Shown: positions 22,853-32,301 of the stretch, one piece after another
Layout: each line of letters opens with the position of its first letter
Numbering within the stretch: the first letter of the stretch is position 1
Assembly: GCF_033153115.1 (NCBI RefSeq)
Contig: NW_026889757.1
Location: 5,084,001-5,148,000, forward strand
DNA: 64,000 nucleotides
Origin: Saccostrea echinata
Lineage: Eukaryota
Direction: 5' to 3'
Translations under genes and position numbers: made by a program
Notes under the pieces: model-generated
What the model was told of the DNA's origin: nothing
Database searches by the model: none
The model's input: the letters and a program-made list of their open reading frames with translations, nothing else

Positions 22853-25800
22853 ATGTCAACTCATTTAGACATTCTTGCTTGGTAAGTTGGGCTTTTAGAA
22901 CTAACATTTATAGCATAGAAGTTGCAATTAGATTAGTCCTAAAAATAATTTACATATTATCTTATGTACTGATACCATGTGCATTGAATATATTTTAAAA
23001 TAAAAGATTAAAACACAAGTCAATGAAAAAAATTGAAAATTACAAAATCAAAAATATTTTACTATATAAAAATATTTATGTTTACCTTTTCAAACATATC
23101 TGAATATAAGATGATGTGCAGAAGAAGTGCAGGTCCCCCCCCCCCTTTTTATTTGAAAATTATGTTAAAATAATGATGAGTAATTCTAACTGTTGAAAGT
23201 ACTGGTATCAATAAATAAAAATCACATGCTAGCATACTTTGAATTGAAAGAGAATAATGATGAAAATCAATACTAAGTAAAACTTCCTGAGGCAGGACTT
23301 CATGAATTTATCTCTACTCACTCTGGACCATAAGATTAGCCCACATATCATACATATTTAACATCCACTGAGCCTGCCTCATGCAAAGCAAATGTTCATA
23401 TGTGAAATTTAATATAATTGCAGTCTTGTAAATGAAAATATAGAGCATCAAAAGTCTGTGTTTTAAATAAAGCCCACTCTTGCTATTTATTTCACATAGA
23501 ATCTCTCACATATTCACAAAAACATGAGAACCGAATAAAAGACACCAAAATTTAGGTTAATTTTGTTTATTTCAATGATATAATGCAGCAAACATTACAT
23601 GTCAGCAGAACCTCAGAGAGTTAATGACAAGTTCCCAAAAGTGGTATGCAAGAAGGTTAAAGCAGAACCTGGGCCAAATTCTAAAAGCACAAGGAATTTC
23701 AATAACTAGTTCCATGATGAGAAGGATTAAGTATGAATACATTATAAAAACCATGCTTAGAAATTTGAATGTTATTTGCATTAGGGAATGAGAGTTAAAT
23801 TTTGCATTACAATATTTCTTTGATAAATGTGTGTGATGCACTGGTTTGTTTGATATTTCTAGTATGATTGTAAATGATGTACATTATAATCCTGTTACAT
23901 TTGCTAATCATAATCCATTTACACTGATATATATTTGTCATTGTGATTCCTTACAATATATAACTAATTTGGCCCAGGTTCTGCTTCAACCCTCTTGCGT
24001 TTCTTCGTAATCTGTCCAGATTTTCTCTCCGATAGAGCAGTTACTTTGGATCTGAGAGCCATTTTCTTTTTTCTGGGAACTTGTCGTTTGAACTCTTTAA
24101 GAGAGTCAACAAGACTTAATTTTATGAAATGTTCACTTATGTCTTGGAAGAGCTCTATGATGAGTTGTAAAACTATTTCATCCTCTATATCACTATCTGT
24201 GGGTATCTTACAAATACTTATCCACTCCTGTATCAATGAATAATTTTCATCAATCTTATTTCTCAGAAACTGATGAATGTTTTCTGTGTGAAAATTAATG
24301 TGTTCAATAGTTAGAGATGACTGTATTGCTCTATGAAGACTGATAAAAAATTTAAAGACTGGTTCACTAACTATAGTAAGCCCTCTACTTTCACCTTGTT
24401 TGGCTTTAATTTCCAACACAGTTTGGTCATTAGTATTAACATCCTCTTCCTTGATCCTCAGTTTCTGAAGAATTGCCTGTTTCTTGTAATCCAGGTTACA
24501 AAGCGCTTTCATCTTTCGACTTGTGCTTCCCAGTCTATGTAGTACGGAGTCTTGAAGCCGTCTTCTGATTTTATAAACACATCTTCCAGCAAGATACCTC
24601 ACCTTGTTCTTTGCTGCACAACTTATATCACCTTGTGTCTGTTCACCTTGTACATGTTGTAGGTTCAAAGAATCTTCTTGCTCTTCTAAAATGGCACTTG
24701 CTTTAGAAGCAAGGATTTGATCTATTATCCACAAAGTTAACTTTGAACTGAACTTGTTTTGTTCTTTTGTTACCTGTTGAACATTGAAAGTTAGTTTAGC
24801 ATAATTGATATGTTCATCACTTAACAGGAAACTGTTTATACTGTGATAAAATGCTGTAAATTCTGGGGGATTTCTCAGTCTAGATGACATATAATTTTCC
24901 ACCTTGTGCTGCAAGAAACAGGCATGTTTTCTAATAGTTTGGGAACAAAGGAATTCCAACGAAAATGATTTCAGAAATTGAGCTGATTTATTTTCATCTA
25001 AGAAGTCATTTATGTTGTATTTAAAGTCATCAGGAATGTGCTGAAATTCTTGACTATTTTCTTCCTCCTGATGAAAGTCCTCTTTGTACAATTTCTGTTC
25101 CTCGGTTTGTTGTGCAGTTTCTGATGGTATTTCGCAAAGTGCACTTGACGAACTATTACAGCACTCCAGATCATCCTCAGGAACAAGAAATGTCTCATTA
25201 TAAAAGTCAAACACTTTCTGAGGATGTTTCAGAAAAGCAGCATCCTGATTGAAATTCCTAATCCTCAGTCCGTCAATAGTTGTTGCCCTTCCAAGGGCAA
25301 CCCCTAGCTGCCCAGCACAGAAAAAAGAGTAACAATCTACTTCCACAAATTCCAGGGTTTGTCCCTGGGCCCTATGTACAGTCAGAGCAAATGCAAGACT
25401 AAGTGGATATTGTTTTCTACAAGCTAGAGTGACATTTCTATCAGGGTCAAAAATATCAAAGTTAGCTTGTTTCATAGTCACCAATTTTCCTGAAAAGTTT
25501 ACTACAGGAGGTTTGTCCTTTTCCAAGGAGTGGATAGTCCCTCTCATACCATTGTAAAGGCCAGAAGCAAGGTTTTTTAAAAGAATTACAGGTGCATCCT
25601 TCTTCAGTAACAGGTGCTTCTGCACTGGACTTTTCCTCAAGAGCTGAATATTTCCTACGATGATATACATTTATAAATATAAAGTCATAACAGATTTAAA
25701 TACTTTCAAAATTTGCCTAAGTCACAATCTCCTGCTACCTGCTAAGAAGGACTTGAATCTCACCTGCCCCTAAGATTTACATTAGGTAAAATATTTGTAT

Positions 25801-31302: not shown

Positions 31303-32301
31303 GCCCTGAAAAGATTCTCAGTCCACCAAATTAACATCCCAGTAATTAACAGTGAGACAAGGAATAATTTCAATCATATAAAGTTTTTGTGATCAAAGCC
31401 CATTAATAAGACTTGGATTTGTCAAGATTTTATGTTTTTCCTGAGTCTGCACTATATTATAAACACCTAACACTAATGTTCGGCAATTCACACTTTGTTA
31501 TTAATATCATGAATTACTGGGCGTGCTTGATTTAGCTTAATTTGGTGTACACCAGTGTACACTGGTGTGAAAGGTGGTGGTGTATAATCAAGTACATTTT
31601 ACGAGTTGTAGTGTATATGTTGTAGTATATGTTTTGCATCTCGACAGTGTGTGGCTAAAATTTTTTTGGTTTAAAGTGAAAAAAATTAAAATATATTATG
31701 AATTACTTAATTATTTAAAATGGTTAAAAAATAATTTCAATGTAATCACTTACACACAAAAGTAGATATTTACTGGTTACAAATGAACATACTTGAAAGT
31801 CGGGACTAATTTCTTGCCATATATGCACAAAAGACAACTTGAATGTGATTTCTTATCCTTTATATTACACAAAATAATTTCTTAAATTTTCAATCGTACC
31901 ATTCTCCGCCATATTGGATTCAGTGTACGCCTTTCAACACATGCCCTAAATTTGGTGTAAGAAAGTGTACAGTGAGAGTACACCCAAAGTGCACTTATTA
32001 ATTAAGAAAAGTGTACACGGTGTAAAAGTATTCTCTATTGAGAAGTTGATGGCTCGTTTTAATACTCCCCCTGTTGAGGGGGAGTATTAAAACGAGCCAT
32101 CAACTTCTCAATAGAGAATAGGTGTAAAAGGTGCAAGTAAATCAAGTTCGCCCACTGTTACATTTTTATATAAACATAGTTTATTGTAAATAAACCCATG
32201 TACCTTAGCCAATGTGTCTTTCCAGTACCACACTGGCCTGTAATTAGGAAGCTGTGGCCTTTAACGGCAAGATCTACGAGGTCTGGGGTGCCTCCATCCA
32301 T
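23964..32301 (-). CDS. PIF1-family SF1B DNA helicase with a long C-terminal extension (~819 aa); exons 32301-32204, 27788-27666, 26938-26749, 26425-26297, 26119-25891, 25654-23964
   Basis: Walker A GQCGTGKT (exon 1), TASTGVA, TLHHWAG, VLVIDEISM, GDFKQLSPV, VRRQ, LLKNL..GLYNG.RG, QYPLSLAFALTVHRAQGQTL, GQLGVALGRA; five GT-AG introns, all phase-consistent, no stops. Confidence 0.9.
32029..32120. mobile_element. 92-bp perfect-hairpin micro-MITE with a 10-bp TSD
   Basis: 44-bp arms (32029-32072 and 32077-32120), GTTG loop, GGTGTAAAAG at 32019-32028 and 32121-32130. Confidence 0.85.

Follow-up and report, generated by a model that had tools for sequence, protein, structure and literature searches.

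Can two genes of a single transposon be threaded through one another, so that each begins at its own end of the element and continues beyond the body of the other? This question is raised by a 10.4-kb DNA transposon of the P superfamily in Saccostrea echinata, which spans positions 22303-32702 of the stretch of DNA analysed here (the window: 64,000 nucleotides of contig NW_026889757.1, G000:C8:5084001-5148000 in the 923-Mb S. echinata assembly that was searched). An earlier note on this DNA, made from its letters alone, had described a transposase gene and a helicase gene that converge from the two terminal inverted repeats, each through a very short first exon. The analysis reported here indicates that the element is quite probably an autonomous cut-and-paste transposon that encodes two proteins from interleaved genes, each threaded through the first intron of the other. 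In such an arrangement, the transposase gene (+ strand) would have its exon 1 placed 212 nt inside the left repeat and its exons 2-4 some 5.6 kb further on, and the helicase gene (- strand) would have its exon 1 placed 63 nt inside the right repeat and its exons 2-6 some 4.4 kb further, past the transposase body. Each gene would be transcribed inward from its own end, and each would have to splice out a multi-kb first intron that holds the coding body of the other in antisense. The coding exons themselves do not overlap, as their coordinates show and as the note had proposed.

The element is bounded by inverted-repeat arms of 344 nt each (22298-22641 and 32364-32707), which are complementary at 99%. 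The ends of the element proper read CACAGG and lie at 22303 and 32702; the left terminal inverted repeat (22303-22641, + strand) and the right terminal inverted repeat (32364-32702, - strand) are flanked by an identical 8-bp target-site duplication, ATTTAGAG, at 22295-22302 and 32703-32710. Membership of the P superfamily is indicated by this 8-bp duplication together with terminal inverted repeats, and by a transposase with a P/THAP9-type RNase H domain. Two S. echinata RefSeq proteins are 100% identical to the region, LOC133181293 (397 aa, P0001) and LOC133181165 (806 aa, P0072). The first of these, identical to transposase exons 3-4, carries PF21787, the P/THAP9-type RNase H domain, as do relatives that are common in bivalves. 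Pfam searches with single transposase exons gave nothing above the cut-off, and exon 4 alone scored only E = 0.003 against PF21787 because the domain is divided over three exons; the intronless relative on C81, described below, scored 48.1 bits against a cut-off of 24.6. The full-length element is present as a single copy in the assembly and is the sole full-length member of its own subfamily. A deletion derivative on C33 retains the left 2.1 kb and the right repeat, and more than 40 non-autonomous elements of about 1.8-2.1 kb have only the repeats in common with the element, at 90-94% identity.

The second protein is a helicase of the Pif1 family (SF1B). RefSeq P0072 matches the PIF1 core (PF05970) at 5.9e-20 and the 2B domain (PF21530) at 2.1e-5, and the Walker A loop, GQCGTGKT, is encoded by exon 1 of the gene as modelled here. 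Both spliced models were checked exon by exon for phase, and searched exon by exon. The helicase model has six exons and about 819 codons. Exon 1 (32204-32301, - strand) reads MDGGTPDLVDLAVKGHSFLITGQCGTGKTHWL, provides the ATG together with the Walker A loop, and ends at a donor AG/GTACAT (slashes mark splice sites); it is 51% identical to residues 1-35 of a Haliotis homologue and 71% identical to residues 22-45 of a homologue in Saccostrea cucullata. Exon 2 (27666-27788) encodes motif Ia, VAVTASTG, and is followed by exon 3 (26749-26938), exon 4 (26297-26425), exon 5 (25891-26119, with P0072 and a conserved VRRQ in support of its in-frame acceptor at 26119) and exon 6 (23964-25654), a long open frame with the Pif1 2B domain, a C-terminal extension and the stop codon. 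The phases of exons 1 to 4 match the RefSeq protein.

This structure, including the junction across the long first intron, was observed in RNA. The data consisted of three small public runs (X1-X3), taken as Logan contigs and compared with positions 22650-28640 only. They represent RNA, because four - strand GT..AG introns have been removed from them (25655-25890, 26115-26296, 26426-26748, and 26939-27665). The contigs cover the helicase gene from 23460 to 27790, with exon 6 and a 3' untranslated region that extends to about 23460 covered over 23460-25653. Joints were found at 25653/25890, at 26114/26297 and 26425/26749 on the two sides of exon 4 (with CT..AC ends), and at 26936/27664 between exons 3 and 2, the joints of exon 3 coming from both X1 and X2. 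In X1, contig 6 runs through exons 3 and 2 to 27790 and then continues for 28 extra letters, whose single match in the window is the 3' end of exon 1 (32206-32233). The two-letter overlap at this point is a shared AG. Therefore, the junction is 32204^27788, and the transposase exons lie within a helicase intron whose junction is used in RNA. This intron (27789-32203, - strand) is 4,415 nt long, has GT..AG ends, and contains transposase exons 2-4 in antisense. The earlier note had placed the Walker A exon at 32301-32204 and the whole transposase body (28503-31302) within a 4.4-kb first intron, and had named 32204/27788 as the junction to look for in RNA; all of this is borne out, except that the exon starts 63 nt inside the right repeat by the repeat boundary used here, not 67 nt. 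Separately, a contig of run X2 leaves exon 2 at 27791 with eight letters, TGTCCTTG, that match neither exon 1 nor the first exon of the RefSeq model.

If the locus were instead a plain divergent pair, as in the RefSeq models P0072 and P0001, then the helicase would start from 28163, the transposase would start from an internal Met, and the distal exons would be chance look-alikes. For the helicase this is contradicted by the RNA contig, which connects exon 2 to 32204, not to 28104. The first exon of LOC133181165 (28104-28163, - strand) does not encode the Walker A loop, is not covered by any RNA contig, and is probably spurious; the RefSeq helicase matches the PIF1 profile only from position 35. 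The Walker A exon is found at the same place in four diverged copies of the element. For the transposase, LOC133181293 starts at the internal Met at 29925, and exons 1 and 2 together with a portion of exon 3 are missing from it; exon 2 amounts to 374 codons and has homologues. Both RefSeq models are wrong at their 5' ends, and a divergent pair is very improbable. Standard annotation thus failed at this locus: the true 5' exons are missing from both models, and the ATP-binding loop is missing from that of the helicase. Other bivalve genomes in which the family is present are likely to be misannotated in the same way.

For the transposase gene, the model has four exons with consistent phases and 797 codons. 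Exon 1 is a micro-exon of 29 nt (22853-22881, + strand) that lies 212 nt inside the left repeat; it consists of an ATG and 26 further nt, encodes MSTHLDILA and the TG of a Trp codon, and ends at TG/GTAAGT. Intron 1 (22882-28502, 5,621 nt), whose existence is suggested by conservation, would hold helicase exons 2-6 in antisense. Exon 2 (28503-29625) encodes the N-terminal DNA-binding region through GGLLIDEMSIQ and has a donor CAG/GTAACA; homologues align from 28501. Exon 3 (29877-30040) is placed by homology and splice sites, and exon 4 (30225-31302), from the end of the N-terminal part of the P-type RNase H domain to the C-terminus and stop, is a 100% match to P0001. The micro-exon joins in phase to the acceptor cag/G at 28503, which completes the Trp codon. 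The note had given the same exon with its perfect donor, the in-phase join to 28503 and the long intron around helicase exons 2-6, and each feature of the sequence lies where it said; its distance of 216 nt from the left repeat becomes 212 nt by the present boundary.

The acceptor at 28503 is conserved in five lineages (the window, C45, C6, C4, and C43), each with a pyrimidine-rich tract and yAG/G followed by coding sequence for L-[AC]-x-[NH]. C45 and C6 have an in-frame stop two codons upstream of the acceptor, and in C43 the frame before the acceptor is open for about 100 codons without an ATG. These three copies need an upstream exon that supplies the start codon. A conserved Y/C-R just before the acceptor was considered as a sign of continued coding, which would have spoken against a micro-exon; this was dropped, as the codons are the pyrimidine tract and the AG/G of the acceptor itself. 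BLAST found no alignable similarity between the left subterminal region of the window element and those of its relatives, and the micro-exons of relatives were located by pattern. In the copy on C29, the left repeat (L054 3401-3705, which matches the opposite end of the C45 copy at 94% identity) is followed after 241 nt by a micro-exon of 29 nt, ATG...TG/GTAAGT (L054 3946-3974). In the copy on C43, with repeats at L059 2845-3167 and 9613-9936, a micro-exon of 26 nt, ATG...TG/GTATGT, lies 76 nt inside the left repeat (L059 3243-3268). The background was estimated by scanning 328 kb of genome for ATG-started, open, phase-2 stretches of 20-59 nt that end in TG and have a donor with at least 5/6 matches. 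This gave 11 candidates, three of which are the homologous sites, and a rate of about 0.01 per 300-nt subterminal region; the length is exactly 29 nt in only two of the 11, those of the window and C29. Therefore, the presence of the micro-exon in two further lineages is not a matter of chance. The conservation of first exons in diverged members, by which the note had proposed to check both genes, was thus found for the transposase in C29 and C43, and for the helicase in C4, C33, C1, and C45.

Relatives in which this region is contiguous point to the same junction. The intronless transposase on C81 begins MNCKHSLSSW/VLENL; here too, the stretch that starts with the ATG and closes with the TG of the Trp codon is exactly 29 nt long, and therefore the intron position in the window corresponds to a point within a contiguous codon of C81. 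An exhaustive profile search with transposase exon 2 found P0300, a mussel-like protein cluster from Logan contigs, which begins MAGNIDIVAW/LCINYTN where the window encodes MSTHLDILAW/LAIHYTN; other representatives in that search translate the pyrimidine tract at the junction point. In the predicted structure of P0300 (pLDDT 89.7, pTM 0.83), residues 2-14 form one helix that runs across the junction. The model aligns with the RFX DNA-binding domain 1dp7 at TM 0.84 and rmsd 1.8 over about 75 columns, nearly all of the 76-residue target, and residues about 1-76 align with RFX5 at TM 0.77. The micro-exon thus probably encodes the start of a DNA-binding domain, and for the N-terminus of the transposases in this family the predicted fold resembles an RFX winged helix and not a THAP finger. 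No match to the THAP zinc finger was obtained for transposase exon 2 or its relatives; THAP characterizes the P element and THAP9 but is perhaps not a defining trait of the P superfamily in its entirety. Taken together, a conserved acceptor, a conserved micro-exon and an N-terminal peptide that recurs in intron-free relatives make the predicted junction of transposase exons 1 and 2 well supported.

Several observations weigh against reciprocal threading. The junction 22881^28503, the micro-exon and the transposase 5' end are not represented by any RNA contig in the three small runs, in which no contig falls on 22650-23450 or 27850-28640; contigs of this kind cannot prove absence. Within the compared segment the runs contain the helicase and no transposase, and contigs cannot rank expression levels. 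In this copy only, an in-frame ATG with 15 codons precedes the acceptor (28456-28502, + strand) and could start translation without the micro-exon. These points favour another reading, in which only the helicase gene is split, and the transposase is transcribed from the 0.7-kb centre between the two gene bodies (27788-28503) and starts at ATG 28456, the 29-nt exon being a relic that is unused here. The frame is indeed open from 28456 in the window. A short upstream open reading frame (22803-22844, 13 codons) stops 8 nt short of the micro-exon and shares its initial letters, ATGTCAAC. However, the stretch ahead of the acceptor reads as a translated pyrimidine tract, and its counterparts in C45, C6, and C43 are closed or without an ATG. 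The micro-exon is intact with a perfect donor, and the ten residues from it are conserved and begin the first helix of the DNA-binding domain in the predicted structure of the relative. This reading as a whole is improbable, if less so than the divergent pair.

Further points against reciprocal threading concern the helicase and the relatives. The RNA contigs are about 2% diverged from the window and therefore come from another allele or individual. The only contig across helicase intron 4 uses the acceptor at 26114, 5 nt downstream of the in-frame one; in the window sequence this shifts the frame and leads to a stop after four codons, and may reflect either alternative splicing that gives a truncated product or an allele difference. 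The end of this intron (26114-26121, - strand) has two AG acceptors 5 nt apart, ttttaag/GTGAG/ACGCC. On the helicase side, too, an upstream open reading frame (32325-32275, 16 codons) overlaps the start codon in another frame, and short upstream frames before both ATGs argue against long leaders that start deep in the repeats. Finally, in the related locus L061 no Walker A exon was found within 1.9 kb of the transposase stop. Searches likewise found none in L065, L067, and L068.

The interleaved layout is not confined to the window copy. Protein searches revealed many diverged transposase-helicase pairs in the S. echinata genome. In C4, C33, C1, and C45, whose transposases are 53-58% identical to that of the window, the Walker A exon lies a few hundred nt past the transposase stop on the opposite strand, and in C4 and C45 helicase exon 2 was also detected, across the transposase body from exon 1. 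For the C4 copy, the locus sequence searched (L051) yielded no inverted repeat, the left repeat lying just outside it. At the ends of the subfamily-B element C29:17529400-17540222, the repeats and the Walker A exon are placed in the same layout as in the window. A second layout is found on C43 (L059), where the transposase has helicase residues 1 to about 252 on its right side and the rest of the helicase on its left. Here, the transposase occupies the position of window helicase intron 5, its own micro-exon is still at the left end, and the start codon of the helicase falls within the repeat itself, 29 nt in. Three metagenome contigs (L062, L063, and L066) have a transposase followed by opposite-strand helicase exons for residues 12-257, with no C-terminal part after them, which fits the second layout in another source. 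The S. echinata genome also contains plain, tail-to-tail, un-nested elements with a P-type transposase and a Pif1 helicase on C81 and C25. The C81 element (C81:2011632-2018826, or 2632-9826 of L057, which is G000:C81:2009000-2018999) has repeats of 498 nt that are 100% identical and two single open frames of 808 and 1,107 codons, apparently intact and intronless, whose proteins are 35-41% identical to those of the window and whose start codons both lie 51-73 nt inside the repeats. A second C81 copy is situated 7.5 kb away, and the C81 element looks younger than that of the window. In all layouts, both start codons are within about 250 nt of the repeats.

From a comparison of the three layouts, the most likely origin of the interleaving would be a plain, convergent, un-nested ancestor like C81, in which the gene bodies swapped places while the 5' ends stayed at the termini. 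Such a swap would have taken at least two forms, because helicase intron 1 houses the transposase in the window, and the place of intron 5 does so in C43. Whether the result matters to the element is a separate question. It is possible, though on balance unlikely, that the interleaving arose neutrally, by a chance rearrangement during gap repair in a copy that is decaying, and leaves expression and control unaffected. When they are repaired, elements of the P type readily become rearranged internally; the window copy is the only full-length one of its subfamily, and host repeats have accumulated in its introns. On the other hand, subfamilies whose proteins are only 53-58% identical retain the same layout with its frames open and its splice sites in place; the second layout is present in other datasets; and helicase RNA is present, with the long intron correctly removed. 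More doubtful still is the proposal that the interleaving is a selected design, which would have arisen at least twice in the family. By this account, the transposase and helicase would be inherited and lost together, double-stranded RNA formed by the convergent pre-mRNAs would throttle the element via a host small-RNA pathway, and output would be tied to the splicing of two multi-kb introns, a form of control comparable to that at intron 3 of the Drosophila P element.

The note had gone beyond gene architecture to propose that identical repeats act as twin promoters giving matched expression. The architecture stands, for the helicase through RNA and for the transposase through conservation. 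Matched expression, in contrast, is not required, since the spacers from repeat to ATG differ in sequence as well as in length (212 nt on the left and 63 nt on the right); a (TA)n stretch is present in the left spacer at 22727-22741. To judge from the anatomy of the element, promoters would be located either within the repeats or within the short spacers that adjoin them on the inner side. The helicase ATG within the repeat of C43 argues for a start site there in the repeat or outside the element, and favours promoters in repeats. By the same reasoning from anatomy, the primary transcripts would be complementary over at least 23964-31302 (at least 7.3 kb), and most internal deletions would destroy both genes at once, since the loss of either gene body takes parts of the other gene with it. 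Polymerase collision, control by double-stranded RNA, and the genetic 'locking' of the two genes, all suggested by the note, may follow from this arrangement. At the inner ends of the repeats (22606-22620 and 32385-32399, and L054 3680-3695), a stretch GCCATT...CGTGACGT(A/C) is common to two diverged subfamilies, its form in subfamily B being TGACGTCA. This stretch could serve as a site for transposase binding or as a promoter element resembling a CRE.

Other features of the locus were also noted. Host repeats lie inside the introns of the element at 27180-27658 and 31880-32160. The first is about 480 nt long and has many copies at 68-75%; the second is about 190 nt long, has copies at 85-88%, and is itself interrupted by a palindromic mini-element of 92 nt (32029-32120) with copies at 93-100%. 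Among the relatives of both proteins, P0028, P0034, P0079, P0089, and P0101 are filed under bacterial names (Sedimenticola and Thiodiazotropha metagenome bins), and are probably mis-binned DNA of host clams.

How does the element compare with known systems? The nearest precedent is maize MuDR, likewise a two-gene transposon with terminal inverted repeats, in which mudrA, the transposase gene, and mudrB are convergent, promoters and start sites lie in or just inside repeats of about 215 bp, and read-through produces antisense RNA (PMC3440606). However, MuDR belongs to another superfamily, its second gene does not encode a helicase, and its genes sit side by side, tail to tail and un-nested; moreover, promoters in the repeats have been demonstrated for MuDR and are only deduced for the window element. 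A helicase as an accessory to a DDE-type transposase is known from KolobokH and Kolobok-1_CCri, sometimes on the complementary strand (PMC9587614), but there the superfamily differs, the helicase is of the RecQ family, and no interleaving has been reported. The C81 and C25 elements share the same two proteins and long repeats with the window element, and differ in their single open frames, placed tail to tail with no nesting. The Drosophila P element and THAP9 resemble it in the 8-bp duplication, terminal inverted repeats, a PF21787-type RNase H domain and a multi-exon transposase gene. The P element, however, is a single-gene element whose repeats measure 31 bp and whose transposase bears a THAP zinc finger at its N-terminus, whereas the window element has repeats of about 340 bp, a Pif1 helicase gene, no THAP match and an RFX-like N-terminus predicted in a relative; the P superfamily would thus gain a Pif1 helicase and a non-THAP DNA-binding domain.

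A limited full-text literature search for P-superfamily or THAP9 elements with Pif1 or another helicase, and for interleaved genes in transposons, returned nothing relevant, and the reciprocal threading of two genes through their first introns in a transposon is apparently undescribed. Two-gene transposons with promoters at their ends are known from MuDR, and nested genes are common in animal genomes; what appears to be new is the reciprocal first-intron threading and a 29-nt first exon placed 5.6 kb from the rest of its gene. The layout is a natural system for the joint study of convergent transcription, long-intron splicing and transposon self-control, and the occurrence of the plain layout and both interleaved ones in one genome gives a rare view of gene-order permutation with fixed termini. 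In the nested and interleaved gene pairs of animals, an intron of one gene houses another gene on the opposite strand, and the two may interfere with each other's transcription (PMC11694760, PMC3192792). Those pairs are cellular and usually nested one way, whereas the pair described here is reciprocal, resides in a mobile element, and moves with it.

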